DNA of 64,000 nucleotides, taken from contig JBLDXI010000026.1 in the NCBI GenBank assembly GCA_047495785.1, positions 434,001 to 498,000 on the forward strand, written 5' to 3'. The stretch comes from Lepidodermella squamata. Taxonomy: Eukaryota; Animalia; Gastrotricha. The notes under the pieces were generated by a model. That model was not told the origin of the DNA, did no database searches, and saw only the letters and a program-made list of their open reading frames with translations. Position 1 is the stretch's first letter. Every line of letters starts with the position of its first letter. Of this stretch, positions 7,916-62,600 are shown one piece after another. The translations under genes and the position numbers were made by a program.

Positions 7916-8088
7916 CTATTCCTACATGCGCATGGTAAAATTTAGCCATTGGGAAATTTAATTTCTCTATGGCTGAATTAAATTTTTTAAGGCGGACTTT
8001 TTATTTCAATTTTTTACGCTATTTTCATAGGGGTATGACCCTTTAACACCCCAAAAAGTGGCTCCAGATAGTGCGCATGTAGGAATAG
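7916..8088. mobile_element. Small inverted-repeat element (MITE-like), 17-bp perfect TIR
   Basis: CTATTCCTACATGCGCA at 7916 and its reverse complement TGCGCATGTAGGAATAG ending at 8088. Confidence 0.6.
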
Positions 8089-8742
8089 CATTACTCTATG
8101 GCTTTCCATGGAGAAATAAAATTTCCCCCCTCTCTGGAACCCCTCGCTAGCCATAGAGTATTCCCTTATTTCGTGATGATGTCAATACTTTAGCTTTTTG
8201 CCCGAAAATGATGCCGGCATCAAATAAATGTCAGGGTAGGGATACTCACTGTAAGGACCCTCTTTCTCTGAACGGTTCTCAGTGGTCAAGGTTAGTTTTG
8301 GTTGCTGGTCGAACATTCGTAAATGATGGACTATGATTCAGCTGTACCATAGAGAACTTCGTTCTCTATGAGCTGTACGGTATAGTTGGACATTTGAAAG
8401 CTCATAGTTTTGAGTTCTACAAGTTCAAATTGGACATTTCGAACACGGACGGCGATATCGTCAAGCGTAACTAGGTCGTATAAATGTAGACACCGGACAC
8501 CTTCCCTGCTCCTTCCTGCTGACGCTGTACGGATGAATGAATAATATCTTTGTTGTCATGCTCAGTAGCACTCCGAATAAAGCACTACTTACAACTTACA
8601 TAATCTGACGGGATTGTTGTCACTCAATGAAACACGGATGAGTACTTAAAAAACCGATAAATCAATTCAGTTTATGTAGGTTGTCCTTCTACGTTTGATA
8701 GCTTCGCTTATCACTTCAGCTGAAACAATTCAAAACATCATC

Positions 8743-39266: not shown

Positions 39267-41768
39267 ATGATTTGGCTTAAATTGATACCAATTTTCCTAA
39301 TATTTTTGGAATCATCAGTTATTATAACGGCCGAGGTGTCTGAAAATGCTAACATTGACGAAGTCTGCCAGACAACAGAGTGCGTCATAGCCGCCGGTAC
39401 GATACTTTCATCAATGAATTTCGAAGCCGACCCGTGCGAAGATTTCTACGAGTACGCATGTGGAAATTTCGAGCAAATCCACGCAATACCAGCCGGTGAG
39501 AGCAAATTTCGCCAGCTCAACGTCATCGATCGAGTCCTTCAGCGTCACTTGCGAGATTTACTAGAAAATCGAGGGAAAACCGAAAAAAACCGATCGAAAG
39601 CGCGCCGTTACTACCAGGCCTGCATGGACGAGGAAAAAGTCGCGAAAAATTCCGTAAAATGGTTCAGAAAAATCATCGATGAACTAGGCGGATTATTTTT
39701 AAACAAAAGCGCCGAAAAATTACCTGAGAACTGGTGTTTCACCGAGCTGTTGGAATTACGCAATCATTACTCGTCGAGTGGGCCGTTTTCGACGTCGATC
39801 GGGCCGGATGATAAAAAGGTCACGGCTAACATTTTGAAGCTGGAACAAGACGGCCTCGGCCTTGGCCTAGATTCGCGCGATTATTACGTCAATAAAAGCG
39901 CTTCAACTGACCCAGTTTTATCGGCCTATGTTGACCTATTAAAAAGTTACGCTGACCTAATTGTGGGCGAAAACCAGGTTGAACGTCGATTTTTCGTTGA
40001 AATCGTGGAATTTGAGCAGAAATTAGCAGCGATTCATCGACCGCGTACCGACCAAGCTAATGTAGCTGATAATTATTTTCGAACAAATATCGCCTGGCTT
40101 GAGGAAGAATTGGACTTCATAAATTGGCAGAGTTATTTCAACGAATATTTAAAACCGATTGCGCTGAAAATCAATGAATCAGAGCCGATTTTGCTGTACA
40201 ATGTTGAATATTTCCGCGATTTAAATCGGCTGATGAGGAAGCAACTGTCGACAAATCACGGCCGTCGTGCTCTTCAAAATTACGTTGTGCTTCACGTTGT
40301 TAATTTTTACGCGCCGTACCTGGGCGGTGAATTTCTGGCGACTCGTGATAAATTTATGGCGATTTTTACAGGGCAGAAAGGATCTTCGGAACGGTGGCAA
40401 ACTTGCTTAGCGGATACTGATGCGAATGTTGGCTTTGCTCTCGGGGCCATGTACGTTGAAAAGTACTTTCCAGAAAGAAATAAATTACTAGTAAGTTTTT
40501 TATAAAAATTCAAAAAATTCAAAAATCTTTGAAAAATTGAAATTCAGAGAAATTTTGGTAAAAGATATTCCACTAATATAATTCAGATTTATTTTTAAAT
40601 TCAGAGTGAAAGAATAGTGGTTGACCTGATCCGGACTTTCCGTTCTCGAATTAAACGGGCTAAATGGATGGATGAAAAAACGCGCAAGAATGCCCTGGAA
40701 AAAATCGACTCCTTAAAATACCACGTCGCGTACCCGGACTGGCTTCTGAACACCACCTACCTCGAAGAATATTACAAGGGTCTAAATGTGACTGAGGACT
40801 ATGTCGAAAACCAGTTTTTATCCTTCAACCACGCGAAAATCAGGATGTTGAAGACGCTGAGAAGTGGTCCTGATCCATTACGTTGGGACATGACGCCGCA
40901 AACGATTAATGGCTACTACGAAACGACGCAGAATAAAATTGTCATACCAGCTGGAATTCTCAATCAGCCGTATTTTTTCCAGACAAAAGGAATTCCGACA
41001 GCTTTAAATTACGGCGCAATAGGATGCGTTGTGGGACATGAGGTGACTAATTTTAGTAAAAAAAATCTGAAAAATAAATTTCCTTCAAAATTCCCTTCCA
41101 AACTATGCTCGAAATTTTTTAAAATAATTGCTAATTATCACTCAATTAATCTAATTTAATTTCCAATTTTTCTCGAGTTTTTCCGATTTTTTTCCAATTT
41201 TCAAAAAATTTCAAAATTTCAAGCCTTTCAATAATTTGAATTTCTTCCTTGATAGCAATTTTTCTCTTTTTAGATTTCACATGGTTTCGATAATGTTGGT
41301 CGCGAGTATGACAAGTTGGGCAATCTTCACAACTGGTGGACCGATGAAACGCGGAGCCATTTCGAAGCTCAATCCGCCTGCCTCGTCGCTAAATTCAACC
41401 AGTACCAAATCGACGGGCTTCATTTACGCGGAGATCAAACTCTAGGCGAAAACATAGCTGACGATGCTGGCATTAAAGCTAGCTACCAAGCTTTTGCCGA
41501 GGCGAGAAAATCAGGCCGGACGAGTCGCTATCGCCAGCTAATCGGAACTACTCTGAACGAAGACCAGCTATTTTTTGTCGGCTGGGCGCAGCAGTGGTGT
41601 TCAATTTATTCGCCGCAAATGATAAAATTCGCGATTTTACGCGATGAACACGCGCTGTTCAAATTTCGTGTCATCGGCCCGATATCGAATTCGAAAGATT
41701 TCGCACGAGCTTTCGAGTGCCCACTTGGATCTCCGATGAATCCTGAGGAGAAGTGTTCGGTGTGGTGA
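39267..41768 (+). CDS. M13 family (neprilysin/ECE-like) zinc metallopeptidase 1, predicted secreted
   Basis: Signal peptide; C..EC, DPCEDFYEYACG, RWQTC, INGYY, GHE|ISHGFD across an intron, GENIADDAG, terminal MNPEEKCSVW*. Confidence 0.93.
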
Positions 41769-42180: not shown

Positions 42181-42703
42181 TTTTATGAGGTAAAAAAAGT
42201 TGATAAACAGGCACATTTGTGCATAAATCAACCTGCGCTTTTATAGCTTGGCACAGCGTGATTCATGAATATTATTGTGATCGATAAGGAATGCGTAGGT
42301 GACCAGTATGCCTTATCACGTTTTTGTAGTAAAAGCCACCCATAGATGAATCTGAGCGCACTTGGAATTTCTGGAAAAATCTCGTGATCTGAGAAATTTA
42401 AAGACAAAAGTGATGAGTCATCATTATTACCGCCGCAAGCTCAACTGAATAAAATATGACGAGTGTCCACTTTTGTCGTAAATTTCAGGCAAAGTGCGAT
42501 GCGGCTTATAGAATACAATATTATATTGAATAACATCATTTTTTTGTTTCTTCTTTGCACTTCCTGTTTGTATCGATAAACATGATGAGCGGAGGCTCAC
42601 GAGCGGACGCATAATATTCTGTGCCAAGGGATGCGTATTTTATGCGATATTGAATACACAAGTTAGACAGTGATTTTATTCAAATTTGCACTCGCGCAAA
42701 TAA

Positions 42704-43039
42704 ATGGCCGCTTTCCTGTATCAATTTGTCCTCATATTAGGAGCGTCGCTGTTGCTGCTGCTAATACCTCGAAGTGAAGCTTCGCCTGTTGTCGAGTCTT
42801 TGAAGACGTTCAGCGCTAATGGTCCGGTGAAGATAGACAGCAAGCACTCGGAGCAACAGCATGGCAATCCGCAGGCGGTGAAAGCGCGCGAGGCGTTCAT
42901 TGAGCGCATCAAATCGCTGCCTGTCTATCGAAATCTCATGCAGAAATGCCTGCAAGTTCAAGCGAAAACCTTCGACTACTGCAACGACGCGATTACGCTG
43001 TACATTTGGGCGACTTTGAAGCACAACACGGACACATGA
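42704..43039 (+). CDS. Small secreted protein SP1 (Y-x6-C-x10-C-x8-W family), intronless
   Basis: 111-aa ORF with a clear signal peptide; C-terminal YRNLMQKCLQVQAKTFDYCNDAITLYIWA matches four other genes in the window. Confidence 0.85.
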   Translation: MAAFLYQFVLILGASLLLLLIPRSEASPVVESLKTFSANGPVKIDSKHSEQQHGNPQAVKAREAFIERIKSLPVYRNLMQKCLQVQAKTFDYCNDAITLYIWATLKHNTDT

Positions 43040-43949
43040 TGGCGTTGCGCTGATCATAATCTCTGATCTGAGAGAATGAGCAATTTAGTCATACATATTT
43101 GCGCTGCAAATTATCAGCTTTCTTATTTATTTAGAGATCAGGAAGGCATAACTTTCAAATAAACGTATTGCGTTTTAAAAAAATGTATTGTTGATTTGCC
43201 TATATCTAACTTGAATTTGGCAGCGAAAGCTAGAAAAACAATTTAGAAAGATTAGAGAATTTTTTTCTTATACTAACGCTTTTTACGACCTTTAATAAAA
43301 ACGCAGCCCGGTCGCATATACTCGAAATTAATTAATTGGGTCATGAGGCATTTGAATATTCATGAGGCGAGGGCGATCTGACTTCTGCCACCCACCTGAT
43401 ACTCATATTTCAAAGCTCACGTGAAGGGATTGCCACTATAGCCCTTTCATAACACTCTCTATATCTAATATTTCAGGAGGGTGTCCAAAAAGCAAATCTC
43501 CGTGCTAAAAAATTGTATAAATCCGGTGGAAACAGATAAAATGTCTTGCTATATTGCTAAATTGCCGAAGAGCTGCGACTTATCCTCCGGCCACTAGAAA
43601 GCTGTGAAAAGATAGCTTAAGTTTGTTTCAAGCTGTTGATGTTTTCAGCAATTCAGAGGTCTAGAGTGAGGTGCTAAATTCATCGAAATTTGACCTATAT
43701 CACACAACCGAAAAGAGTGATTGCGAAAATGCGTTTTGAGAATTGTGGGGAAATTTTATTTTATGAAGAAATTCAAATTTCGGCAGCAAGCGAGCTAGAT
43801 TCTAAGCGTAACAAGGCGGGATCATGGTATTGACCTGCATATCTCGAAGAGACTGCGTCGCAAGCGGTGGAAAAACACAAAAAAAGCGTGCGAACCCCGA
43901 ATAAATGAAACACCGTACTTTTTATTATTCATGCATCAGCGACTCCAAT

Positions 43950-44191
43950 CAGTGTGAGACTTTCAGGGTGGATGGGGGGATCATACCCCCAGCTCGGCCG
44001 GGCCAGACGACAAAAAGAGAATTTATCCCACTGTTTTGTTAATTTTGGAAGGTTCTGGAGCGTGTTTTAGTGGAAAATCTCCGAAATTTTCACGCTTCGC
44101 TCGGTTATTCGCCGAAATGACTAGTCATTTTGGCAAATACACCAAAAATTGTTTACAACCCTGGCAGCTCGGGATCTAAGATCGCACCCTG
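43950..44191. mobile_element. hAT-like MITE with 8-bp target site duplication, just downstream of NR copy I
   Basis: ACTCCAAT duplicated at 43942-43949 and 44192-44199; imperfect TIRs CAGTGTGAGACTTT / AAGATCGCACCCTG. Confidence 0.7.
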
Positions 44192-44234
44192 ACTCCAATA
44201 GTAATTAATTGACTGAATAGAGTAAGTAGTCACT

Positions 44235-45769
44235 TCATTCACTCTCTGAGGGGACTCCGTCGGGAAACCAAGAGCTAGCGCGAGCCTGTGCTTTTCTCAT
44301 AAATATCGGCCTATACGCTGCAGCTTGTTGCATGATGGCAATGGCTCGGTCGACGTGGTTCTCATTTTTCTGCGATGGATTTTGTCTTCCTAAACCAGCG
44401 TGCAACATGATGAGTGAGTTTTGCAAGACATGTGATTGTCGAACAGATGCCGGAATCGAAGATCCTGTGTATAAGACAATCAATCATTATAATGACATGT
44501 GGGCAGATGGGGGTCGATTTGGTATGCGTACCACTGAAAAACAGGTAGCACAGGAATACCGCCAACTCGGGCATTGTTGGTTGCCAGCCAGCCAACACGT
44601 GCGATAGCTGCATCGCCCACATGACGACAGGCTGAGAAAATTACAGACAAATACTTATTAGGATTCATGAATTTTCCCGACATACAGATCACTATGCAGT
44701 AAACAAAACACAAATAAAAATGTTCACCTCAAACTCCGGTAAAACGGTCAGAAATTGTGGCACGATAGCTTTGTTGATCGACATTGGATTTAACTCGCCG
44801 GGTTGGGACGGGAACGCAATCGCGATTAAAGGCCATCCTGTCGCAACAGTTTCTTCCAACGCGCTTTCTGAAATGGCGAAAGCTTCTGCAAGAGTAAAAT
44901 ATTAGGTATTTCGCCTTTATAAATAGTCGAAGCGTAAGTACCTTTCATGTAATGCGAAAATCTTACGCGGGCTTTGTTGTACATTCTGAAGTGATTAGTG
45001 GCGAATTCCTTTTCCAAATTGGTAGGGTCGTCGTAAGGAATATTCCGTGTTCGTAGGGGCAACTAAATTTTCAAAAAGGTGAATCGAAAGCTAAGAATTA
45101 AAACGCGATAAAAAACCGAATATAAGTCGTGCAGAAACGTGAGTCCAATCACTGAATTTTTAGTGGCTGTTTCAGCCAATGTCATGAGTTTGAGATCAGG
45201 ATTGCTTGGTATCGTTGAATTCAGTCTGTGATCAAGGAAGTTTGTCATAAAGGTTATGCGGCAATGTCAGTAAAATGGCTAACTCAGAATGGTTGATCCA
45301 CCCATTTCCACTAGCATCTTCTGAACCTTCTGAAGGCAAGGCGAGTTGCTTTCTGAAGCCTGACAAAGTCTATAGATTTCATTTTGATAAAATAACGAGA
45401 ACATCTACCATACTTGTTCCATGCTTGGCAGCGAAGCATTTTTCAAGCCGACAACGGGTACAACAACCACGCGTTTCTCCCGGTTTTATCTCACAGTTGA
45501 ATTTCCCAGTGACACATTGAAAGTCGTACCTTCGGCATGCTTGTCGAGCGAAAAATTTCTTAATAAATACGGGTAAATTATGGATAAAAGAAATTGTTAA
45601 GACGAAGTTTACCTGACAAGCATTACATTGCCTTGGATGGTATCGCTTTCTAGGCGGAACAACCTTCCCGCATATCTGCGAATGGGAATTATTTAATTAA
45701 TGAAGTCGAAAAAGGCAACGATTTTACATTGCAGTAGATGGCGCGTTTATGTTCTTGTCCATTTTCCAT
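44235..45769 (-). CDS. Divergent nuclear-receptor-like gene, copy I (inverted and separated from the array)
   Basis: MENGQEHKRAIYCN|ICGKVVPPRKRYHPRQCNACQ|KFFARQACRRYDFQCVTGKFNCEIKPGETRGCCTRCRLEKC; same exon pattern; ends SWFPDGVPSESE*. Confidence 0.85.
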
Positions 45770-47075
45770 GCTTAGGCCTGAAATCATTCGAGTTTAATAT
45801 CGATGTTAGAAAGCAAAATGATTGAGCTATAGAAGGCATCATTTTTTTCATGACAAATGCATGGACGCTTTATTGATTTTTTCTGCATTAAGCAAAGCCT
45901 GTACATAATCGAGCGAGTAAAACGTTCGTACAGTAGATACGTTATTATTAAGTTATCGACATAAAAGTGACTTCTAAAGATAGTGATACTTTCGATCGTT
46001 AAATGTCGTCAAGTTTAAGCGACGCGATGGTGTTTTACGCTAGATCATTTGTGAGTGCTAGGCAAGGCTTATTCGATCAAATTACAGGATCACAACTGTA
46101 TAAGGCTCGCTGCATATCGTCAGCTGAGGCTTCAGACGGCGAAATAAATTACCCCCTCATTTCTTTGCAGTTTACAATTTCAAGAGGTCCTAATTCCGAT
46201 GCCACCAGGATTCTGAATAGCACCAGGAATGAGGCGATTCGGACAGGTGTGGGTCTATTAATATTAATGATACTTAAATATTAATTTCAAATATTGCAAA
46301 TGTGTTATGCTCAGTGGTCGAGTGGCCTCAGGTCATGCAATTTTTACGATAGGTGGGTCGTCTTTCCACCTAACTCCTTGCAAAATGTCATTGCCAATGG
46401 CCAGGTAGTTTTTGAGTAATTCTCATTCTTCTGCTTGCATGAACATTTGTCGAAAAGCCCCAATGACTCAAATGACCCCAAATGACGGTATTAAGTGACG
46501 TGGAGAGTTATGGACATGACTTTAAATACAATGTATGATACATGTTACGAGATTCAGCTCAAAGCATAACCCTATCACGTTCGGTAACTTCGATTTTTTT
46601 ATTGATAACTGAGAAAGGGTCCCAAATCAGCATTACTGTTGCAATGCTTATAATATAAATTTACTAATTGTTTCCATGCCAAGACCAAGACCACACTTTC
46701 TGACTGAATCTATGACCAAGTACAAGACCAAAATCCCACAAGCAGGTGTTTCGTTAAAGGCCGAAGACCAAGACTGATGATTTCAAATGCGCACGCAATT
46801 TCTACTATTTTCTATTTTGAGCATTTCCCCTGTGAAAGCCAGCAGCCAGCAGCCACCAATGATCAATTCTTTTAAAAGCTAAAAAGGCTAAATTTTTTAT
46901 ATATTTTAATTTTAGTCAGGATAGCATACACATTCACTTGTCAACATTCAGACTCAACAAGAACGTGTATAATTTATTAACTCCCTCATGAAAATAAGTG
47001 ATTACAATGATACATTTTGCCGATGGCGAGGCTTCTGCTTGTTGTTAGCCAACATCCTATTAGGCGCAATGCATT

Positions 47076-47494
47076 TTACTGGCCTTTCATGATGTCTTTA
47101 GCGACCTGTTGCGCCCACAGGTAGAAGCCGACTTGGTTCTTGCAAATCGCCTCCGACTGCAGCTTAGCAATACACGTCTTTAGCCGCTTTTGGTAAGTGG
47201 ATTGGCGAACCTTCTCCAGCAATGTAGCCAAGTCTGAAACATCTGCATTTTCGATCATTCTAGCAACATTTTTCTCTAAGAAAAAAAAGCGAACCATTAA
47301 ATGAGTTTCCTACAACTTTGCTAAGACTTACCAAGATGATCGGACCGCTCTGCAGTTACCTTATGAGTGTCTATGCCTGTTCCTTTCAGGAGCGCTGCCA
47401 AATTAGCATGGGAGAAATGCTTACCGTCGGCCTTCGAGTCACATGTTGCTACCTTCAAAAACGCAAGAGCTAAAATCGCACAAGCAAGTTTCAT
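47076..47494 (-). CDS. Small secreted protein SP2
   Basis: MKLACAILALAFLKVATC signal; phase-1 GT-AG intron; final exon YQKRLKTCIAKLQSEAICKNQVGFYLWA. Confidence 0.82.
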
Positions 47495-47752
47495 TTTAGG
47501 CGATTTCGACAAGAATGAGCTGGCAACGTGCTGCAATATTGCATCGCGCGAGACGCCGAGTGGGTGAGCACTTCATAGGTGCCTCTTAGTGCATGGGTGT
47601 CTCTGGTTGTCTTTAAGACATACTTCAACAGCCGAACGAATCGATCAATAACATTTATTACTATGTGGGTGGAAAAATTTTCAAATTTTTATTCACATTG
47701 ATACGAGTCCTGGATTTCTTTGTTTATCGCTTTTGAATTGGCTATTTATGGA

Positions 47753-48131
47753 TTACTGCTGGTCATTTTTCATAATTTCTTTGGCCAAGTGGCTCATCCA
47801 CAGCTGAAAGCTGCCGCGGTTGTTTCGGCATATTGCTTCAGATTTAAGCGTTTCAATGCATTTCTTCAATCGGCGGTTGTAGGCAGCCACTTGAGCGCGG
47901 TTGAGGATGGATGCCAAATCAGACGTACTAGTTTTTTCTATCAGCTTTGCTACATTATGCTCTAGAATGTACAAATAATTTATTTGATGTTAGATTTGAA
48001 ATTAGAATCTTACCAAACTTCTGATGAGCTGGATTAGTTGATTTTACAATTTGATCCTTCGTTGGTGCACCCAATACAGATGCTATGAAGAGAAAGGCCG
48101 AAATAAGAATGATAACGCTGAGAGTAGCCAT
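47753..48131 (-). CDS. Small secreted protein SP3 (tandem paralog of SP2)
   Basis: MATLSVIILISAFLFIASVLGAP signal; phase-1 intron; YNRRLKKCIETLKSEAICRNNRGSFQLWM. Confidence 0.82.
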
Positions 48132-49142
48132 TTATCAAAATTTAATTTACAATCCACGAGGTGTGGGTAAATGTGTAAGATTACTACCTACTTAAATGCA
48201 TTCAGCAGCGTGCGAGACTTCCGCAAGTACCGACGAACGTTTTCCTCTACTTCTCGGTTTTCATTTGAAGTGTTCCCCGCCCATTTTGGCAAATTCCTAT
48301 CGTGAAAAAGAACTCAACGTACCAAGTTATCGCTTTCAACAAAGACATGGCACATGGCTGCATACTGCGCTGTGTGCGGAGTAGGTTCCGGCATAATATT
48401 ATGTGCAGTAGCGAACTATGCTGTGATACTGATTGAAAGTTTTCACAATTTTCGTACGAGCAAGTTTCTGAGTTAATTGAGAGTTCACGACATCCGACGG
48501 CATGAATGAGGAGGAAATGAACAGTACGATAGCTGTGAGGGTTTTCGAAGTGCTAAGCGTTTGATCTGGTTTTATGAAACCTCTGAGCCTTAACTCTGTG
48601 ACTGAATTGATTGTCGAAATGCTTCAATATTTCGCCTTTACGGAGAAAATAAATCCGAAATTGACCAAAAAGCGTGGGATAAAACTTCAATCCGAGATCT
48701 GAGTCGTAGCGAAGTCCGAATTTTCCAACTACAGTTAGCAATAGTTAAGGAAACTCCACACATCACTGTGTCGACCGCGGTCGCGATGCTATTCAACAAA
48801 TTCGAAGAAAAAATTATGACGTATATCTAATTTATTAGCGCGCAGTCACTCCTTTTGTAGAAATTAACAGATAAAAAATGAAAAATAAGGCCTCTTTTCA
48901 CATGTCGTGTCTCACTTTGAGTATCATCTCAATGCGGCACTTTCTGCAGCAGGAACTGAAGTCAGCAGTTTTTTCAAAGAACGACCGCAGTGCAGCATAT
49001 TGACAAGTACTGGTCCGGTAGCATTTTTGACGCGCAGTGACCTGTGCAGCTTCAATTGAGGGCAAGTGTTACTTTTAGCAAGTTTCATAACACATTTTGC
49101 CTTCATGATAACACTTTTGGCTAAAAAAGCTTGAGATTTTAT

Positions 49143-49732
49143 TCAAGCCCAATAGTTGTCATTCGTGCTAGTCGGTGCTAGGATAATCTTGTGTTCCGTA
49201 ACTTCATTCACGCGACCGAATGTTTCTTTCACCATGGTATGAGATGCATTGCTGAGAATGTGATTGAGCCTAGAGAGGCAATTAGCTGTCGTAGTCCAAA
49301 TGCCATCCAAACCTCCGTGGAATCCATCAACTGCAGCTGCGGATTCGCATATTATCCTCCTCCTTGAAGATCTTTAAATATTAAGATGGATAATGCTCAG
49401 GTTCTCACTCACCAGTGAAGATGGTTTTGCATGAGGTGGCATAAATTTGCACAAAGCATCATCTCGCGTAGAAAATGCGCCATCCTCTCGCTTTCATACG
49501 CAATCTTCCGCAGAGTCACGTCCATTCTGTCGAGAAACGGCGTTTTTCGCCGCGCCAGGTAGTTGGTGAATTGTGCGGCTGTTGAATCGGCGAGGTCTGC
49601 AATGGCTTGCCACGTTCTCCGGTCGCTCAGGTCAATGCCCTGGCCAGCCAATGAGTGGAGCAATTGTTTCGACGGCTTTATCAGCTGCCGTACGTCGTTA
49701 GGCTTCAAAACTTGTTGCGGCTTTCTGGACAT
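49143..49732 (-). CDS. Orphan protein of about 180 aa (two-exon model)
   Basis: 107-codon ORF ends at a TG|GTGAGT donor; splicing to TTCAAG| gives WRRIICESAAAVDGF...NDNYWA* followed immediately by AATAAA. No family recognised. Confidence 0.45.
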
Positions 49733-50483
49733 GGTAAACGTTTAATCTATTCACACTCAAAAGGTACCAGAGCTTATATTTGGCACGGTAGTCAAAGAAA
49801 ATTAGGGGTATAGTGAAATGTAGTAGGTGAAGCTTAGGTTTTCAATCCGAGGCGAGATTACCATTTTGAAAAAAACTCGTTAAAAGAGCTGAATTTGAGC
49901 TGCAAGTAATAAAGCCCCACGACAGCTTTTAGATTATGGGCTCAGAGGTATCTGCCCTTTTCCACTCGTAAAGTGTTAAATAGCTTTGATATTGGTATCG
50001 AAAATTGTTGTAGGACAGTAAAAGGCTTTTTAATCTTTTGCCTCTAATCTTTCTTCCCAATGAATTCCCAGATCTTTCTAAAAAAAAGAATCTGCGCCGG
50101 CAATAACTGCTAAGAAAACTAGCCTATGCACTGTGCGGAGATTGCATGTACTATAAATGAGAGTATATCCGAAGCTTTTTATCGGCTAAATCAAAAACAC
50201 TGTTGTTATAATGCTATTTGCAGTGTTTTATGCGCAGTGGTTATATGTATGTATGAGCGCGACTCTTCATATATACTGTGTGCGCTATCTTCTCCCGCGC
50301 TCCTCGGCCACATTCTATTTCTGTGCGATGTGCGCTAAGTAATTTGGACAGTGTGCGCCGGGCAATCCTTTTCATGCTCGCTTTCATCACGTACCACTGC
50401 AGTGTCTTCCCCACGCAGGATGGATAAAGAGCAAGTGGCTTGCGTGACATCAATGATGTCCCCCTTAAAAGACTTAGGTATTA

Positions 50484-52751
50484 ATGTTACTGACACGAAT
50501 CTTGCCAGTATTGACATGGCTGAAGCTGGCCGCAAGTAGTGACGAGACATGCTGGTCGCAAGAATGCCTTCAGGCCGCGTTGGAAATCAAGCGGAATATG
50601 AATGAAACTGCTAGGCCTTGCGATGATTTCTATGAATATGCTTGTGGCGGGTTCGAAAAGTACCAGGAAATATCACCAGGCCGCGATAGCGTGACTCAAT
50701 TCGGACTGATAAAACAGCATTTATCAGCAAAATTACGTCGAATTCTCGAGATGACAGAAAGGATTCAAACTCGGAACTCCGTCAGCGATAAGCTGAAGCG
50801 GTTTTATACATCTTGCTTGAATGAAACTGGGAATGCAGGGTATTTCCTGAGAGAAATGACTTCGCTGATGGGCGGCTTGTATTTTGAGCGGATTTCTGAG
50901 TTGCCTCGAGATTGGTCATTTCGAAAAGTCTTGGTTAATTACGATAAATTTAGCGCCAGCCATTTGTTCACGCTAACAATAGGTCCGCATTTCGAGGACT
51001 CAAATTCTAACTCAATTCAGCTTCAGCAAGGCAGGTTACTACTTGGCATTTTCACAAAGGCTTATTACCGGAATAAAGACATCGATTCCGATCCTATTCT
51101 TCTCGCATTAAGGAGAAAGCTTTCGAAGTTTGCGACCCTTATAACCGGTGATCCATATGTTGATGAAAATGTTGTGAAAGAAGTTATTCAACTGGACCAG
51201 AAGCTAGCTTTGATTCACGAAGACAAGGCGAATTCGGTACGATATCGACTTTACTCTATTGATCAGCTCCGGTCGAATTTCAGCTTTATCAATTGGCCGT
51301 CTTACTTCAATGACCTACTCTCATTGCCTACTATGGAGAGAGAAGTGGATGGCAAAATAATTGTTCAGTCGGAACCATTCTTTCGCAAACTCACAAACTT
51401 ATTGAGGGTTTACTTGATGTCCCCGGATGGCAGAAGGACTGTTCAAAATTATCTGGTTTTTGGTATGATTTCCGAATATGCTGCTATTGCTGGTGGGGAG
51501 TTCCAAAAAGCTGAGGAAGAGTTTGATGCAATTTTTTCCGGGAAACAGGGCTCGGAAGAAAGATGGGAGATGTGTGTCTCTGAAATAGCTTCATCTCTCG
51601 GCTTTCCCCTCTCCTCACTGTATGCAGCAAACTACTTCTCAGAAATGGACAGCTTTAAAGCAAGTGAAATAATTACTGGGACGTTTCTTGCACTTCGAAG
51701 GCGATTGGAAGCTAATGGTTGGATGGATGACAGGACAAGGCGTTATGCAATTAAGAAGCTCAATATGATGTTTTATAAAGTTGGGTATCCCGATTGGGTG
51801 TTCAATGGAACTCAAGTCGAATCCCTCTATCAATCGCTGTCATTAGGCGATTCATTCTTAGCCAACAAAGTTGCTGCTTATCAGTTTCATCGTAAGAACA
51901 TGATTGCCGTAAGTTCAAGTCTCGTCCTTATTCGGTACTTAAAATTTTCCATCAGAAATTACGGGACATACATGACAAGTCCGAATGGATCAACTCCCCA
52001 CTCACTGTGATTTCCTATTACGATTTATCGTCAAATGGAGTCATTTTCCCTGCAGGCATGCTAGCGAAACCTATTTTCTACCCAGATGGCAAGATTCCTT
52101 CTGCTTTGAACTTCGGATCCCTAGGAAGTATCGCTGGACACGAGGTTAATATTTGCTTTTTCTAGGCTTTTCGCGATTCCTATCTTTAACTACATAGATC
52201 ACACATGGATTCGACAATATCGGTCGGTTGGTAAGCTTTCTCCGAATTTCTCTTGAAACTGATTAGATCTAGCTTGTTTATAGTTCGACAAGTTTGGTAA
52301 CGTGAAGTATTGGTGGTTTGAAGATCGGTCGGAAGAAGAATTCCTCACTAGGTCAAACTGTTTCGTGTCTAAATTTAATTCTTATGAAATCGACGGAGTA
52401 CGAGTGAAAGGGGAACAAACTCTGGCTGAAAACATTGCTGATGACGGCGGCGTGAAAATTGCGTATGACGCATTCAAAAATTACATGCAGGGTTCCGAGG
52501 CTCGAAACAAGTTCACCCGGCTACCGAGGTTGAATTTAACAAGCAATCAGCTATTTTTCATCGCTTGGGCTCAAACGTGGTGCTCAATCCGCCCACCTGC
52601 GTCGTCCAGACTAAGAATGGAAACCAGCTCCCATTCGCCGAATCGTTTTCGCGTCAACGGGCCCCTGGGCAACTCGGACGAATTCGCGTCAGCATTCAAC
52701 TGCCTACCTGACACTACCATGGGTTCCCAGGCTAAATGCATCATTTGGTAG
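50484..52751 (+). CDS. M13 family metallopeptidase 2, predicted secreted
   Basis: Signal peptide; RPCDDFYEYACG, RWEMC, GHE|ITHGFD, AENIADDGG, HSPNRFRVNG, terminal CIIW*. Confidence 0.92.
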
Positions 52752-52947
52752 ACATAATTTTTTACTTGGAAAAATACAATCTCTGACGTAAGCATAGATA
52801 AATAACTATTGTATTTATTTATCTATGGACGTAAGTCTTTGTTTCGTAATAAAAAGTCGTGACCTAAGCTGTTGAGCGAGGTCTGTTTTAACAAAAGAGG
52901 TGCAATGTACTCAAAACCAGCCTCAAAAAACGACTCAAATTTAGAAT

Positions 52948-55258
52948 ATGCGTCTTTTCTTAGCTTTCTCACTATTTTATAGTGCTGCTTCTGCTCCATT
53001 ATCGCTTGATGACCCAATCAGTCCGGCTAACCCATGCACGAAAAAAGAATGCATTCGAGCCGCCGGGTTGATAATCAATCAAATGGATTTCACTGCCGAC
53101 CCTTGCGAAGACTTTTTCCAGTACGCTTGCGGAGGTTTCATGCTGAGAGAAGCCATTCCAGCCGGCAGTTCCGTGGTGTACCCAGAGGCAAAAGTGACAA
53201 AGGTCATCCAGAAACAGCTGCGAGCAATGCTTGAGGCCCCGATTCAGCCTGCCAATGAATCTCTCAGTCGATCTAAAATTCGCCAGTACTACACATCCTG
53301 CATCGATTCAGATAGCATACTGGAAACCCAGCAAAGCCTGATGAAACAAGCCATCGAAACAATGGGCGGCTTGTATTTAACGGCCGACGCTCAAGTTCCC
53401 GCAAATTGGTCACTGGAATCAGCTCTACTCGATGATTTCGGCTTACTTTACTCATCGATATTCTCAGTTGATGTAACAATAAACGATCGAAATGCTTCTG
53501 AGAACATCTTGACGCTCTCAATGGGCTCTTTGGGCCTAGGATCTGGAACTCGCGATTACTACATCAACGCATCGATCTATGAAGATCGAATCTTGCGAGC
53601 TCTGTCGAAAAAGTACGAAAAAATCGCTGGTATCGTGCTTGAGGAAGCTCAAATCGACAGCACAATGCTGGAAGATGTGTTGGTTTTCGACAAAAAGCAT
53701 GCTGAGATCTCGCAACCCTTGACGGATTTCGCCGATCGGCTGAGATCCTTCAAATGGACCAATGTTAGCTCTTTCCAATCGAATTATGACTTCTTGAACT
53801 GGCATCGATTCTTGAATAGGCTGTTCACGACTGCCAACGTATTTGTCACTCCGACTGAAAAGATTTTGCTGATTGGAGAAAGGTACTTCGAAGGCTTGAC
53901 AAAATTGTTGAAAGAATACACCTCGACTAGTGAAGGCCGCCGAACAATTCAGAATTACATTGTTCTGAAAACAGTGGCAGATTTAGCTGATAATCTCGAA
54001 GGAGACTTCAAACTGATGAAAAATGAGTTCAACGAAGCATTCCTCGGCACCACCGAGTCAAAAGAGCGCTGGGAGGCATGTCTCAATGATCTTCGTGGGG
54101 ATTTAGGATTCCCCGTCGCTGCAATGTATGCCGAAAAATATTTTGCTGGTGCTAACGTTACGGCGAAACAGGTTTTTCTCACTAACATCATCAAAGAATT
54201 CAAGAGCAGAATCCAAGCTGCCACGTGGATGGACCGGCGGACGAAACAGAGGGCACTGGAGAAGTTCGACAACATGGTTTACAAAATTGGTTACCCTGAA
54301 TGGCTGTTCAATGAAACTTATCTATGGAACAAATACTCCAGTCTGAAAGTTGGGGAGAATTATTTGCAAAATCTATTCAGCTACGTTGATTATTCCAACA
54401 AGCGGCTGTTTAGGGTGAGTATTTGACATTGTGCCAGACAAAACCTAGCGCTTTAATGCAGAGCCTGAGGCGACAACCCGATCGGGCTGATTGGGCGATG
54501 CTTCCAATTGAAACCAATGCCTATTACGATATGATTTACAACTCAATTTACATTCCACTCGGGTATATTCAGCCTCCATTCTACTATCCAGAAAGGGGCC
54601 TGCCTATTGCCCTTAATTTTGGAGGCATTGGGGCAACTGCTGCTCACGAGGTTAGCCGGAATAAACTCATATCCCCTAAAGCGTAATGTCTCCACAAACA
54701 GGTCACGCATGGATTCGATGACGGTGGGCGCCAGGTAAAAAAAATAGGAAAAATGGAAACAATTGAATTGGATGATCAATGTTCTGAATACAGTATGACA
54801 GTTTCGGTAACCTTGTTGACTGGTGGGGCGACAACTCAGAAGAGCAGTTCGGCAACAGAACTCAGTGCTTCATCGAAAAATTTAGCGCTTACGAAGTCGA
54901 CGGGATGAAGATTGACGGAGCCCTAACTCTCAACGAAAACTTGGCTGATGATGGTAGTGTTAAACTGGCATATCAAGCTATGCAGAAGTATTTATCTACG
55001 GAAGAGGGGAAACGAGATCCCGGCCGACTCATCGGTCTCGATTTGAATTCAGAACAGTTGTTCTTTCTCAGTTACGCTCAGTCGTTTTGCGACTTGATGT
55101 TGCCCGGAGCGAAGAAGCTGCATATAGAGACGGATGTGCACGCTTTGAATCGTTTCCGAGTAATCGGCCCACTATCTAACTTTGAAGAGTTTGCCAAGGC
55201 CTTCCGGTGCTCGTCTGACGCTAAAATGAGTGCTAAAACAAAGTGTGACCTGTGGTGA
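52948..55258 (+). CDS. M13 family metallopeptidase 3, predicted secreted
   Basis: Signal peptide MRLFLAFSLFYSAASA; DPCEDFFQYACG, TNAYY, AHE|VTHGFD, NENLADDGS, terminal CDLW*. Confidence 0.93.
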
Positions 55259-55459
55259 GAATGCGATGTTAGATTAGTGTTTAATAAACTTCTAGGAAAA
55301 TTTGATTCTTTAAGTGGTGCTAATTTCCGCCTTGAAGAGCCCACGTCACACGTCTCTCTATGAATTAAGGATTTCGTGCCCCGGTCGAGCAACGTGGGCT
55401 TTTCAAGGCTCGAATGCATTTAAGCAGTTTCTGAGTAAGCTTCATCAGAATTTGCAGCC

Positions 55460-55772
55460 ATGAAAGTGTACATCGCATGTCTGATTTTTTCGGCCTTCAT
55501 CATTCATCTTTCGAATTGTGCGCCATGGAGACATTCGATGAGTTTTAAAGGTGGTTCATCTCGATTCCAAATTGTCTGCGATTTTACTGTAAATTATCAT
55601 TTTAGCTCGTCCTGATCGGGATATGCTTCTCGCTCGTTTCAAGGCCTCTGAAGCCTACAGGCAAATGCTTTCTCGCTGCTTCGGTGAATTGAATTCTATG
55701 ACGCAGTGCAACGAAAGAATCAATCTCCAACTCTGGGCGCAAATGACTGCCAAAAAACTCGGAAACGCTTAG
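55460..55772 (+). CDS. Small secreted protein SP4 (two exons; missed by the ORF track)
   Basis: MKVYIACLIFSAFIIHLSNCAPWRHSMSFK|ARPDRDMLLARFKASEAYRQMLSRCFGELNSMTQCNERINLQLWAQMTAKKLGNA*; phase-1 intron. Confidence 0.8.
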
Positions 55773-55841
55773 GAATTTTAGCTGAAAAAGTCTCGAGAAG
55801 ATTCATCTTACAAAAATATGTGGTAACATTTATTTCCGACT

Positions 55842-57187
55842 CTATTCTTCGGGGTCATGACAAGTTGTTTTATCAAATCTGAACCAATAAATAATAGGCT
55901 TAGCTACAGCATTCAGGTGGAAACAGATCAAAGCAGCTGCCAACCATCGCTGAGAAATTATCATGTTCTTAGCATGATAATCGTCTTCAATCAAAAAGTA
56001 GATGACCAGCGGTAACCAGCAGGCTAAAATCGCGAGTAAAAGCAGGGAAACTGTCAATAACATGGCAGCTTTCGCTCGAGTGAACGTTGCTCGATACTCC
56101 TTGAGTGGAATGACCTGGCAATTTATGCGACCAATAGCGCCGACTAGCGGTTGCTCGTCATTGTTAACTGAAGACATCACCTGATTCTTCCGCCCTGATC
56201 CATTTTTCGAACCATTTCCTTCACAGCACAATGTAATTGAGTAGACAATAATGAAGGCTGCGATTATAAGGAATACGGCCAAAGTCAAGGCGCAAATGAT
56301 GTATTGAATGATTTGCGAGTAAGCAAGTCCCAAAAGGCCGAGAATGCCGGTAAAAACTGCCGCGCAAAGCCATAAGGCTGGGACAAAAATCTGCATGAAT
56401 AACAGCGGACCAGGTCGACCATAATATTTGAAGCTATGGCCTCTATTGCTGAGGAAGAGGTCCAGAACCAAAAATCCCATCGTTATCGCAGAAACGATCC
56501 AACACGTCTATAAGGAAAACAAGGTCATTTCTAGAAAGATTCAAGGTAACTAATACTTACCTGCCAAATCATGTTTCCGAGATATAGGACATACACTTTC
56601 GGCTGCCCTTCCAGCAAAAAGTCGGCTCCTCTCTTCACGAGGGTGAAGATACTCAATAAAACGTCGCTAATGGCCAGACTAGCTATTAAAACATGTCTCG
56701 GCGACCTTCCTGCCCTAATCTGGCATAATTTTGCCAAGACGACGATGTTAAGTATAGTTGCAATAACGATCAGAGTTGCCGCGATTGGTAAGTAGTACAT
56801 TATGAAGACGTGCCATAGTTCCAGCTCGCTGTTAAGGCAGGTTATCGCCTCATTGAGTTCGCATTTACCATACTCGCGTAAGCAGTCCTCGTGGAGGCGG
56901 GATAAAAGGGACTTGGAACTAAAATTTGCTGAAGAACTGTTGATTATATCGGCTTCTAACGAATCGACTTGTTTCGATAGCGGGAATGGAAAGAGTGGCC
57001 AGGTCAGTCTGTCGTAGACTTTCTCCAAAGAACTGTTATACTGAGTTTGCAGGTCTTGAAATACGCCGATCTCTTCTTGGTCGTAAAAGTCTAATCTTGG
57101 AACTGACTGGCCAAGATCAGGAGCTGAGACCAAGCGGCAAGTATAATCATCGGAAGAAGTAACTGCGTACGCCACTGGATTGCTCAT
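55842..57187 (-). CDS. Atypical class A (rhodopsin-like) GPCR, two exons (intron 56508-56560)
   Basis: Seven hydrophobic segments; TM1 N (ILNIVV), TM2 SLAISD, TM6 CWLP, TM7 NAVAKPIIY; long Cys-containing N-terminus. Confidence 0.85.
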
Positions 57188-57544
57188 TTTTCTTGAAAAT
57201 TCTACGTTTGCACTGAAAATGAACGTTTTATTAGGGTGGATTACCTATCGATAGGATGATGTAAAAATAATTGAAAAATAAGCGCCGCGCTGATGCGACA
57301 TTAATATGATAAGCTGCTGGTTTCATCGCGTGTGAAATACATGTCGCATCGGCCACTTATAACTTGGCACGCGCTCGTCAAATTTCATTATCAGCGACAC
57401 GCACACAAGCAACGATTTGTCAAGTCTCGTTTTCAATACCTGTGCATATGTGTAATAATCCGACTCGGCCGTAGCTTTTTTGTCGTAGCCTTTGAAGACA
57501 GCGTAAAAACATCGCGTGCGACTTGACATAATCGCACGGCCTAC

Positions 57545-57592
57545 TGCGTAGTAGTAGTTGTAGTAGTAGTAGGTGAGATGATGATGATGATG
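57545..57592. repeat. Compound microsatellite (GTA)n/(GAT)n
   Basis: GTAGTAGTAGTTGTAGTAGTAGTAG followed by GATGATGATGATGATG. Confidence 0.7.
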
Positions 57593-59186
57593 CCAAGATA
57601 CGCTTTGCTATACACACCGGTCGGATGTTATTTACTTGTCAAATCATGTGTGTGTTTGTGTATGCGGTGAATAATATGTAATATACTATGTCATTAACAC
57701 CACTTGGCATGTCACGATTGCAACCGACCGGTCGTACAAGTGCGAGGTATCCATGACAAAAAATCACGTCGAGTAAACAAAACATTGGCACGCTGCACTT
57801 GCCACTCTCGGCGGCGCGCGCGCTTTGTTCAAGAAGTGAAGTGCGCCCAGTTGTTTGCGAGCTTTTATATTGCGTTTCGTTTCTTTTCTGCGCGAACGAG
57901 CAAACAACGCGCTGTAAGCTCTGCGGTTTCAATAGGAATATAATCTACACTGTTCAATATTTCAAGAGCGGTACTTACGTCTTGAAGACAAAGCTATCGC
58001 AGTCTTGTTGAGGTCTTTATACAGATAGAGATTGAATGGCCTCGATTCTTTCGATTCTCGAAATTGCGAAAAGGACATTGACAGAGTATCTGAATGATAG
58101 CGTTGATAATTTATTTCGACCTCTCATTTATTCCGAAATTTCAAATTTTAAAGAATGAATTAGCTGGTGAAGTTTATTCATCATAAACCTTTGTTCATGT
58201 TGGGAAATAAACTTTCCGCTTTTCGTCTAATTGAAGTTGGCTGTATTCCTAGGAGGGTGAAAAATGGTAATTATTTGGGTGCAGCCCCTAATTCCCCAGC
58301 TTTGTCATTTCCCTCAATAATGTAATAAAAAATGAGCAATCCAATTGTCATAACAATCCACTTCTTACTTAATGGTTCTAAATTCTAAGGATGTAGAGTT
58401 TCTTGACAAAGTACCTCTTGCTGTTGTAAGCGATCAAGGCGGAGTTTGCAAGCTGCGATTTAGTAATATGGTAAAAAATTCGAATTTGATGAAATTCGGC
58501 AAAATACCATGAACTTCAGATGGAATCGGAAAAACAGATCGGAAAATAGTTCAGGAGCCATATAATGAGTTTCTGAAGTCAGCTTTCATTCTTCAGTCTC
58601 GTTCCGGCGCAACCTTTTCCGGCTTCCGTCCTGCAAATGTTGCGTACATCGCAAGGACTTTCTGAATATATCAGAAAATGGTTTACAAAGAAGTCTACAT
58701 GATGATTTATGACCGTGAGCCAGAAAACCCGCTATGAGTCAGGTTTCGGAAAAACTTGAATTCCTTTCTACTTTTGCCGTTTACTTGCAATACACAAATG
58801 CTGTCTCTTAAAGAGTAACGCCAACTTTGACCTACTTATCTGCGGATAATACCAGGTTCGTTTTTCAACTAGTCTCAGATCCTTTCACTCATAATATTTT
58901 GATCAGCCCATTGGATTTTTTCAGTTCAGCTATAGCGGTAGTGGGCGTTATCTGCGTAATAGGCTAATAAGCCCTTCATTACGCGATAATCGATTGTGAT
59001 TACACTGCTCTGGTGCGGTATAGATGAGAACGTCGATATCATTTTCCCCGTGTATAAGCGGCGAGCGTAGGAGCTATCAATTTTCGAGTGCATAAACTCC
59101 CTCGAAATAGCACGTAGATGGCTATAGGATGCAAATCATTTCACCGCCTCTCGGCAAGAGACATTACTCGTTTTGATGATATGTGA

Positions 59187-59525
59187 ATGGAGCTCGCAGT
59201 GATCCTTATCTTCTGCTTAATCGCTTTGTCCCAAGGATTTGCTGCTACAGCTGAGTCCCAATTCCTTAATTCAGGTTTGTTTCCTGCTTCTTAGATCAAA
59301 TGTCTCTATTTTTTCATTCACTTTCCAGATTCCAATCCACTTGCCCGAAAGTATGGCTTCATCAGTGATCCTAAAACCGATACGAAAGTTCTCGACTGGC
59401 TCAAGTACCAAAAAAGCTTTCTGGAGTGTCTGAATCAAGCCAAAAATACGGAAGCCTGCAGGGACAAAATAACCTTCCAAATGTGGGCGAGAATCATGAC
59501 TCGTAGAGTTAAAGCCAGTGGTTGA
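59187..59525 (+). CDS. Small secreted protein SP5 (two exons; missed by the ORF track)
   Basis: MELAVILIFCLIALSQGFAATAESQFLNS|DSNPLARKYG...KYQKSFLECLNQAKNTEACRDKITFQMWARIMTRRVKASG*; phase-1 intron. Confidence 0.8.
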
Positions 59526-59631: not shown

Positions 59632-62600
59632 TTAGCTGCCGGCATGTATAGGCCGTAATACTGACCGGCCTATTACAGATAGCTGCGTGAAATTAGCCGC
59701 GTAGTAATTCTCCACCGAACTAACAGAGACAGGCCGGCTTCGCCAGTACTCCCATTTCGTGGCACGGTCGACATCTAAACTTGATAATGCAGCGTATATT
59801 GATATGGCTAGAACTGCAGATATAGATGCGAATATGAGGTATATCCCCGCGAAAAACCAAAAGGCATTCTGGATGAAAGAGATAAAGTCAGCATTCATTC
59901 GAAAAATATGCAAAATCTCTTACCATTGAACCTATGAGTTCAACGCAGGCATATTCACGAACAACACTGTCATACAACTCGTAGGCAGATCTCAGCTTTC
60001 CAACGTCTAACGTTATCCCATCCGCTATCTGATCGATCAGCATTGAGACAAAGTGGGAAATTTGGCGCTTGAGAAGATTCAAAACCGCTTGAACGTAATT
60101 CTCGAAATGTCGAATTTGCCTAATCAAGAGGTTTCGCTGCGTTACGGCCTCTGATGCCGCATATTCAGCTTCCTTCCAAAATTTCATCGCGGTTTTCAGC
60201 CCGTCAAAGTATCCCATCAAATAGCCTCGGAACCACTCTGCCATAGCCCGTTTCGGGGCTAATGAGTCAGTTACGCCAGGTTTAGCTCTCAACATGCAGG
60301 TTGAACAATTTTTGAGGGCAGAACCGTAGTCGAGAGTTTTGTTGAGATCTACTTCCATGACCATCTGCCCGAAAATCTTGTTGCCATTATTGACAGCTTG
60401 CGTCATATTAGCCATGTAATTCGAGATTTTGTTATCGTAAATCACGACACTTGCAGTCAAATTGAAGTAGGTCACATTTTTCATCTCCGTGACAAATTTC
60501 GTGTCATTAAGTAACAGGAATTGGTTGATTGTCTGCCCATTCTTGGCGGCCGTGAGGAATTTCCCCAAAGTTAGGCGGCTATCCAACAACTCCGTGTCAA
60601 TTGAGTCGACAAGTTTGACCACGCATTCTGGTAGTAGGTGACGTATTACATTGTCGTAACTGCCATTTTCTCGCCTGTTTATCATGTCATCAAGCACGGC
60701 ATTGTCAGTGGATCTTACAGCTGAGCACACTGTCTTTTCAATGAAGCCTCCAGCGTAGAAGTGGGCGGCGGCATTCACGCAAATTAATGGCCCTCCTACG
60801 GCGACGAAAATTACTCCACCCCTGGAAAAATAATTAAGACGGTTTTTTTATATACTAAATTAAAAGGGCAGAGTTCAACTCACGCCAACACGAAAGCCCG
60901 GCCAAGTTTTGCGAAACGTGGCTTGACACGTGGACGCAGCTTGACTAACACGTCATCTCTCCGAAAGTACTCAAAAATAATGAAACTCGAGCCAATTAGG
61001 ACCAAAATCAATTGAATCGAAGCGATTATCAGCATGACCCAGGTCAAAGCGTTCCTTGCGGTGAAGTAAGGTTTAAGGGACTCGATAAAATCAGCAATAC
61101 TATCCGATGATTTGGTGGCAACCACTTGATCAACCGTCGAAGTTTCCCCAGTCCAAATATTGGCGATTTCGTCATTGGAAACAACCAAAGCAGCAGAATT
61201 TGGCTTGAAGTCACTGCTTCTTTTTGACCTGAATCGTCTGTTCGATGGGTTCAATGTTGTTGTAGCTTCGCTATTGGGACATTGACCATTGGTAACCAAT
61301 GAATGGAGGTTTTTGTTGTACCAATTGGTGTAGTAGCTGAACCATGATTCAAAATCTTTCCTTAGTTGAGCCTCCAGACCGCCGAATTGATTCACGACAT
61401 TGTCTTTAGTCAGTAAGGTCTTCATCCTAGATCGAAGGCCATTCGTCTGATTCAGTAATAGAGACATCGAGACATTCAACTCCTTCTGCTGGACATAATG
61501 GGACATTGAAGCTGGGTTCAGCCCTTCAGGTAGATCTGGCCACAGGCAGTCCATGCAGGTTTCAGATTCCGAACAGGTTGAGTCATTCAGGGCCAAGCAT
61601 AGCTGGGCTACAACATCTCTAGCATCTTTGTTGCTTTGAAAGTCCAAAAACTGCCTCTCAGCTTTGTTTAGGCGTTGAGTAGCAGTAGAAGCTTCCCGGT
61701 AACTCGCAAGTAACGGGTTGATTGTTGATTCCTCCCACAGTATTCCAGTTAGGAACATGTAAGTAGCGCCAGACTTATCAAGCAATGTGAGCGCTTGGTC
61801 AGGGTCGGCAACAGCTTTGCCCAATGATTCTACCATTCTCGTGGCGAAGGTCATTTTCTTCTCAACGTCATTTATCAGCATTTTCCCGACCGAGTCGAAT
61901 GAGTCCAAAAAGTAGTCGACTATTGAGTTCAAGTCAGAAGTCGTGTCTTTCGCGATTGACGGCGCCCTCATTAATGAGTTAGAAAATGAGTTGTTGAAGT
62001 AGAATGACGCAACGAGGCCAAAAAGTGCCAGCAAAGTCTGTAAGAAAATTAAATTATTCTGGTCATATTTCCGAGAAAAAACTCACAGTTGAGATCGTTA
62101 TGATGGTCATAATAATTATGGCGACAGGATAGCGAGACCTTGTTCGATGACTTTTCCTATCGATTTTTGTTATTCCAGGCCAGTCGACTTCTTCCTTGAC
62201 GTAGAATTGCTTTTGAAATGCGGGATTCTTTCGGTACCGCCGTTTCGTTGTTTTGAAAACAAGATACGAAATTGCGGGGACAAAAATGAATGAAAGCAGG
62301 AGTCCAACAATCGCAGCAGCAAGGAGAAACTTGTATTCTAGAATGCTTCTTCCGATGTTACTAGAAGCGTCATCTTTCTGTCCAATGGCTTCCAAGATCA
62401 TCTCCCGAAGAAAACCTCGATTGATATAAAGGCCGAGATGAATAGATGGAACTTATTAAAATGCTTACTTTTAGCCTTTGAAGTTGTTTCCAGTTTGTCG
62501 ATGATTTTTCCGGTAAATGAGTACAGATTCGGCCAAGATTCCTGAGATTCATACGAGGCAAGTCGCCCGGCATGAACTGCGCTGACTTGGAATCTATAAG

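Follow-up and report, generated by a model that had tools for sequence, protein, structure and literature searches.

Several kinds of small secreted protein are built as a helix-loop-helix hairpin fixed by disulfides, the best known being the plant alpha-hairpinins and the Cs alpha/alpha toxins of scorpions and cone snails, which are often basic and in which two CX3C motifs supply four cysteines and two inter-helix disulfides. The five genes described here, SP1 to SP5, lie in a 64,000-nt stretch of the genome of the gastrotrich Lepidodermella squamata (C26:434001-498000, C26 being contig JBLDXI010000026.1 of a 121-Mb assembly of 151 contigs), which we call the window. Their predicted products are likewise small, secreted and often basic helix-loop-helix proteins with a putative staple, but they have a single cysteine pair, C-x9-C (x8-x10), which would close the loop, and an F-Y-x-W-A helix, and they lack CX3C motifs. 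Foldseek, VIA-align and PDB sequence searches found no sequence or fold match.

Other described systems share single features with these genes. Calcitonin/CGRP/DH31 hormones (PF00214) have a ring of 4-6 residues after a dibasic site, then an amphipathic helix and an amidating Gly; the present precursors resemble them in length (~100-130 aa), signal peptide, basic residues, Cys ring, helix and a Gly near the C-terminus, and differ from them by a ring of 9, by the absence of a conserved dibasic or amidation signal and by hundreds of paralogues. The PF00214 profile matched neither SP1-SP5 at E <= 10 nor 24 family members at E <= 1. The twin-Cx9C (CHCH) proteins, including UQCRH, are helix-loop-helix proteins of similar size with the same Cys spacing, but their two Cx9C-type motifs pair across helices in the mitochondrial intermembrane space and they have no signal peptide, whereas the present proteins combine one Cx9C with a hydrophobic N-terminal signal; UQCRH was the best row of the PDB sequence profile search, at a nonsignificant E-value of 0.92. 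Basic helix-loop-helix (bHLH; PF00010) domains also place a basic stretch before a helix-loop-helix of ~55 residues, and structural rows of this type reached Z 4.2-5.0, which is in the noise range; they are nuclear DNA-binding dimers without Cys or signal peptide, and no Pfam HLH match was obtained. Saposin-like proteins (SAPLIP), ~80-aa helical bundles with six Cys and three disulfides against two Cys here, gave no match in Pfam, PDB sequence or Foldseek searches. In genomic organization, the closest parallels are the nematode insulin-like and NLP genes and the mouse secretoglobin/ABP genes, which are expanded families of small secreted proteins of communication or defense; the present genes are similarly taxon-restricted, with tandem arrays of short signal-peptide genes around a conserved scaffold, but the scaffold is new and shows no homology to theirs.

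We consider it very probable that SP1-SP5 belong to a real, new family of secreted proteins. The best overall explanation, to which we would give a probability of about 0.45, is that they are real genes of an undescribed multigene family with a ligand-like binding domain. The window reads as eukaryotic (introns of ~50 nt, GC 41%; the assembly contains no COX1), and a regular-expression scan of its six frames for the motif Y-x6-C-x9/10-C-x8/9-W returned exactly five matches, against a mean of 0.01 in 100 shuffles. They fall at the five places given by the initial annotation, which had been made from the letters of the window, and the five core sequences that it quoted were all re-read identically. 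The gene models are as follows.

42628-43039, plus strand: SP1, single exon; coding sequence 42704-43039, 111 aa; cDNA 5' end at 42628
42926-43009, plus strand: SP1 core motif, with Cys spacing C-x10-C; family profile E 4.5e-18
47494-47332, minus strand: SP2 exon 1, signal peptide and variable N-terminal part; donor CTT G/GTAAGT, phase 1
47275-47076, minus strand: SP2 exon 2, conserved domain; motif 47115-47195; stop 47076-47078; profile E 7.8e-28
48131-48014, minus strand: SP3 exon 1, signal peptide and short variable part; donor TTT G/GTAAGA, phase 1
47961-47753, minus strand: SP3 exon 2, conserved domain; motif 47798-47881; profile E 1e-22
55460-55550, plus strand: SP4 exon 1 (predicted), signal peptide; donor AAA G/GTGGTT, phase 1
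55606-55772, plus strand: SP4 exon 2, conserved domain; motif 55656-55736; profile E 2.6e-20
59187-59274, plus strand: SP5 exon 1 (predicted), signal peptide; donor TCA G/GTTTGT, phase 1
59329-59525, plus strand: SP5 exon 2, conserved domain; motif 59406-59486; profile E 8.4e-18

Once their two exons are joined, SP2, SP3, SP4 and SP5 encode proteins of 120, 108, 85 and 94 aa, respectively. In all four, an upstream ATG exon with a hydrophobic start reaches the core exon only through an intron of 52-56 nt (GT..AG, phase 1). The N-termini of SP1-SP5 show a hydrophobic run followed by small residues at -3/-1, and the five proteins are probably secreted. Expression was examined in the contigs of one public run that behaves as cDNA. 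One contig spans SP1 from 42628 to 43034 with 0 mismatches, and its overhang is the template-switch adaptor of SMART cDNA synthesis; because this contig covers SP1 unspliced, the gene is intronless. On the minus strand, a cDNA joint between 47275 and 47332 skips the 56 nt of the SP2 intron (GT..AG), which shows that, of two possible phase-1 donors, the distal one is used, and two contigs join 47961 to 48014 across the 52 nt of the SP3 intron (GT..AG). SP1, SP2 and SP3 are expressed, and the introns of SP2 and SP3 are spliced as predicted. The phase-1 intron that had been proposed before the core in four genes is therefore confirmed by cDNA in these two, while the SP4 and SP5 junctions are predicted from the sequence only.

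The five genes are part of a much larger set. A profile built from the five cores and run against the whole assembly yielded 284 candidates, at least 150 of which match at E <= 2e-6, and 149 of the 150 genome matches listed contain no internal stop. Many of them stand in tandem arrays on contigs C3, C19, C29, C42 and C54, and a further array is found on C26 immediately past the right end of the window. A codon pattern for C-x5-F-[YF]-x-W-A matched the assembly 206 times, against 14 times for its reversed control, and since this pattern is fitted by 77% of sampled members, the assembly would hold ~250 copies; the matches suggest that most of these domain copies are arranged in tandem. In 32 fetched loci we found 79 domain matches, nearly all preceded by an ATG and a hydrophobic N-terminus; many have a phase-1 intron of 43-60 nt at the same position, and others are intronless like SP1. 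All five window genes match the family hidden Markov model (HMM), with E-values from 8e-28 to 8e-18, which bears out the earlier view that they form one family of small two-Cys secreted proteins. The family is not one of five, however: SP2 and SP3 are ordinary members, and SP1, SP4 and SP5, although they retain C, C, W and A, are the most divergent of those sampled, none sharing more than 35% identity with another sampled sequence, so that the window holds a divergent fringe of a family that also has homologs in other animals.

The conserved C-terminal domain is about 51-65 residues long, and the consensus of its core, which spans about 51 residues, is R-[LM]-x-K-C-x9-C-x5-F-[YF]-x-W-A-x3-A-x2-I-M-x-G. 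In an alignment of 143 non-identical domains, the two cysteines are present in 100% and 99%, W in 96%, F and A in 90% each, S in 84% and R in 83%, followed by a further A (82%), two I (76% and 73%) and Y (71%); of these, both Cys, W, F, A and R count as invariant throughout the family. The Tyr at -7 of Cys1 that opens the motif scanned in the window occurs in only 20% of the domains and is a local feature of the five genes. Cysteine spacing is x9 in 122 domains, x8 in 13 and x10 in 2, and 133 of the 143 contain exactly two Cys. Net charge ranges from 0 to +13 (mean +5.1), and from +3 to +6 in SP1-SP5, in line with the description of the core as often basic. The N-terminal parts are short, without repeats or processing sites. 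A subfamily of longer proteins (160-230 aa; C33:794001-804000, C30:765001-772000 and C60:353001-357000) has in addition an N-terminal helix with a conserved Cys at its end, followed by a basic/Ser/Thr/Pro linker of low complexity and predicted disorder, and where the helix before the core begins there is a fourth Cys, in the context C-[SD]-N-V; this subfamily may represent an ancestral four-Cys form.

That SP1-SP5 are chance open reading frames (ORFs) or a decaying repeat family might have been argued from their short exons and from the reported absence of two of the five from the ORF track. This is refuted by the spliced cDNA and by dN/dS values of 0.04-0.26 (detailed below), and the near absence of stops among the genome matches and the homologs in other animals speak against it as well; we regard its probability as close to nil.

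Searches and structure predictions were queried with single exons, the joined SP2-SP5 translations serving only for reading-frame checks. An AlphaFold2 (AF2) model of the SP2 exon 2 domain, with 20 paralogs in the alignment, is a helix-loop-helix (pLDDT 80, pTM 0.53), as had been anticipated from the sequence when a helical hairpin was proposed. Its helices span residues 12-38 (ending at Cys1), 41-45 (holding Cys2) and 47-62 (bearing the F-Y-x-W-A...I-M face). Across the family domains, helix 3 is hydrophobic at almost all of positions 37-41, 44-45 and 48-49. Because both cysteines are invariant in a secreted protein, they probably form a disulfide. A homodimer prediction for the SP2 domain scored 0.01, a value that weighs neither for nor against self-association. 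The model of the long subfamily reached a pLDDT of only 63 and has a disordered linker, and for these reasons was left out of the fold searches.

None of the searches connected the domain to a described family. SP1-SP5 had no match in Pfam at E <= 10, nor did 24 family members at E <= 1; Foldseek of the model against PDB gave 0 matches; the best VIA-align wide rows (augmin and bHLH, Z 5.0) are at noise level for helical models; ESM Atlas returned at best 0.82 by features (DUF4543/C17orf67 and UTS2B), under the lead threshold, and only generic helical bacterial rows by shape; and a literature search on the literal core motifs and sample accessions yielded nothing relevant. The initial annotation, which did not recognize the family, is upheld on this point by the lack of any significant relative in Pfam, PDB, Foldseek, VIA-align, ESM Atlas or the literature.

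Profile searching, which it had also proposed, did find relatives among proteins. When 1.84 billion cluster representatives were searched exhaustively with a HMMER profile, 62 proteins matched at E <= 1e-3, ~58 of them genuine, P0001, P0035, P0044 and P0051 being rejected as long repeat translations. Word-seeded searches are insensitive here: SP1 alone had no match, and with full-length alignment only 4 ENA proteins were recovered. The genuine relatives are 44-251 aa long, most of them 90-155 aa; they have a signal peptide, and the domain is C-terminal. All 30 that we looked up derive solely from Logan or from metagenome assemblies in ENA, without protein name or accession. This absence of named homologs is meaningful because the searched database does contain named animal proteins. 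The contigs that carry the relatives are animal (Cys-loop channel, Sushi, EB, PHD and VWA genes; GC 37%), and a tRNA-synthetase fragment on one of them is 74% identical to the ortholog of the present genome, which indicates related but different animals. Two members, P0011 and P0005, are adjacent uninterrupted ORFs (7028-7345 and 8001-8324) on a 17-kb ENA metagenome animal contig, so that the tandem habit is common to that animal. As far as these sequence searches reach, the family is undescribed and taxon-restricted, occurring in this animal and on metagenome animal contigs.

A second copy of the whole region, at C25:2192828-2230090, is ~5% diverged in noncoding DNA with many indels and could be a haplotype or an ohnolog. 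Comparison of the five genes between the two copies gave 4 nonsynonymous and 25 synonymous differences in the core (dN/dS 0.04; binomial p = 1e-13 vs neutrality), against 13 and 14 in the N-terminal part (dN/dS 0.26; binomial p = 0.001), and the two parts differ from each other (Fisher p = 0.008). The SP4 gene shows 0 nonsynonymous and 5 synonymous differences, and the SP5 protein is identical in the C25 copy. The idea of rapid diversification, which the initial annotation had put forward, does not survive this comparison. Its suggested measure, dN/dS between SP2 and SP3, was computed and is uninformative because synonymous sites are saturated (pS 0.81, dN 0.43), as among window paralogs generally. 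Since the core dN/dS is 0.04 and the synonymous sites of the paralogs are saturated, the family is old and constrained, its paralogs having diverged anciently, and constraint is relaxed only in the stretch that separates the signal peptide from the domain. Divergence between the C25 and C26 copies is uneven, with 25 mismatches in 150 columns at 47319-47468 (SP2 exon 1 and intron) vs 0-8 in many flanking bins, and at synonymous sites SP2 and SP3 are more diverged (0.21-0.27) than noncoding DNA is on average (0.055); haplotypes, ohnologs or gene conversion may account for this.

We tentatively favor an extracellular ligand-like binding domain, a role that falls somewhat short of an even chance. 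Each gene encodes a predicted signal peptide, then an N-terminal stretch of low conservation and, at the C-terminus, a conserved cationic domain with a predicted helix-loop-helix fold; the loop is probably closed by the invariant Cys pair, and the last helix bears a near-invariant aromatic and hydrophobic face (F-Y-x-W-A-x3-A-x2-I-M). The domain would be an extracellular binding module whose invariant helix 3 face engages a conserved partner, and the identity of each paralog would be held by its variable surface and N-terminal part. This interpretation is preferred because the conserved face is specific (aromatics together with an invariant R and S), because purifying selection on the core is very strong and because the paralogs are old and individually maintained. 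Several points weigh against it. A number of ~250 paralogs is more than usual for a ligand family. Tandem arrays of cationic amphipathic disulfide peptides are also typical of host-defense peptides. The neighboring GPCR (G protein-coupled receptor) and M13 peptidase genes are absent from the other arrays sampled. Signal peptides were called by eye and with a Kyte-Doolittle window, and the exon junctions of SP4 and SP5 from the genomic sequence.

Three other functions deserve to be weighed against a ligand. The proteins are possibly host-defense peptides, antimicrobial or membrane-active, in which a cationic stapled domain binds and disrupts microbial membranes and the arrays are expanded immune effectors. 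A net charge of at least 0 in 143/143 domains, an amphipathic and hydrophobic helix 3, the conserved Cys pair, ~250 copies in tandem arrays and a phase-1 intron between the signal-peptide exon and the mature exon would all be expected of such peptides; the pattern of conservation fits them less well, because conservation is highest in the cationic domain and the upstream region varies, the reverse of many antimicrobial peptide families, and because the near-invariance of F, Y and W and the invariance of R and S suggest that a specific fold or partner is involved and not just a generic amphipathic helix. Pfam and PDB sequence searches also revealed no similarity to known antimicrobial peptide families. 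We hold this explanation to be a possible but doubtful one. Less likely again is a structural or carrier role, in which the C-terminal domain would help a secreted material to pack or oligomerize (candidates are gland secretion, egg envelope and extracellular matrix) or would carry or sort the variable N-terminal part. Helix 3 is more hydrophobic than a two-helix hairpin can bury, which would suggest self-association or a partner, structural secretory proteins are commonly high-copy, and the long subfamily carries a further N-terminal helix, a disordered linker and two additional Cys; yet the N-terminal parts are short and devoid of repeats and processing sites, and the old, individually conserved paralogs fit distinct functions better than bulk material.

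Processed, amidated hormones of the calcitonin type, finally, appear very improbable. Cleavage at the basic residues that precede Cys1 would free a peptide of ~40 aa with a disulfide ring, an amphipathic helix and Gly as amide donor, and the order of basic site, Cys ring, helix and Gly is indeed that of the family, 83% of domains having R at -4 of Cys1 and 98/143 having G at W+11; three M13 peptidase genes and a rhodopsin-type GPCR are, moreover, interleaved with the SP genes. Against this, a dibasic pair precedes Cys1 in under half of members and not in SP1, SP4 or SP5, the basic stretch lies within predicted helix 1, and the ring has 9 residues instead of 4-6. Only 3 of the 98 domains end at the Gly, which is mostly followed by N, Q, SE or a single K and not by a G-K/R-R amidation signal; M13 genes do not occur at the other arrays sampled, Pfam gives no calcitonin match and ~250 genes is far beyond any such hormone family.

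The M13 (neprilysin/ECE-type) genes are located at 39267-41768, 50484-52751 and 52948-55258 of the window (plus strand), with a fourth just outside it (C26:498136-499683, minus strand); the four paralogs are intron-poor, interleaved with the SP genes and 34-39% identical over the N-terminal domain. Atlas and protein searches with a neprilysin gene brought up no closely related named protein, the best matches being from wasps at 27% identity. The GPCR gene, of two exons, lies between SP4 and SP5 (55842-57187, minus strand; weak 7tm_1 matches, E 2e-5 and 9e-5). We found no M13 gene at the other sampled family arrays and consequently treat this neighborhood as coincidence; linkage to M13 or GPCR genes was rejected as a general feature of the family because it does not recur there. 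A Cys-loop ligand-gated channel gene is present at 29536-30804 (minus strand). Right after SP5, two ORFs on the minus strand (59888-60778 and 60880-62034; 295 and 383 aa) have no Pfam match at E <= 0.001. Between SP1 and SP2, the summed contig depth of a DNA-like run rises from ~80 elsewhere to ~16,000 at 43909-44282 and to ~900-1,300 at 46153-46526, a jump that identifies both segments as high-copy repeats; the cDNA run has low-depth contigs with joints between opposite strands across 44110-45434, and no direct or inverted repeats of at least 40 nt were found inside 43400-46700.

Because the family is expressed and its core evolves at a dN/dS of 0.04, it does something specific. If our interpretation is correct, one of the largest gene families of a 121-Mb genome is a secreted domain that lacks a name, a Pfam model and any solved or predicted structural relative, and that no paper describes. 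The alignments of the family suffice for a Pfam-type model of the new domain, which, with ~55 residues and one putative disulfide, is tractable for synthesis, structure determination and binding or antimicrobial assays. More generally, metagenome assemblies contain animal gene families that are missing from annotated proteomes. It is conceivable, though on balance unlikely, that these proteins are a new class of animal signaling ligand, a disulfide-stapled helix-loop-helix "mini-cytokine" with ~250 paralogs in one lineage of small invertebrates; if so, this would imply an equally new receptor system and a very large repertoire for peptide signaling or chemical communication.

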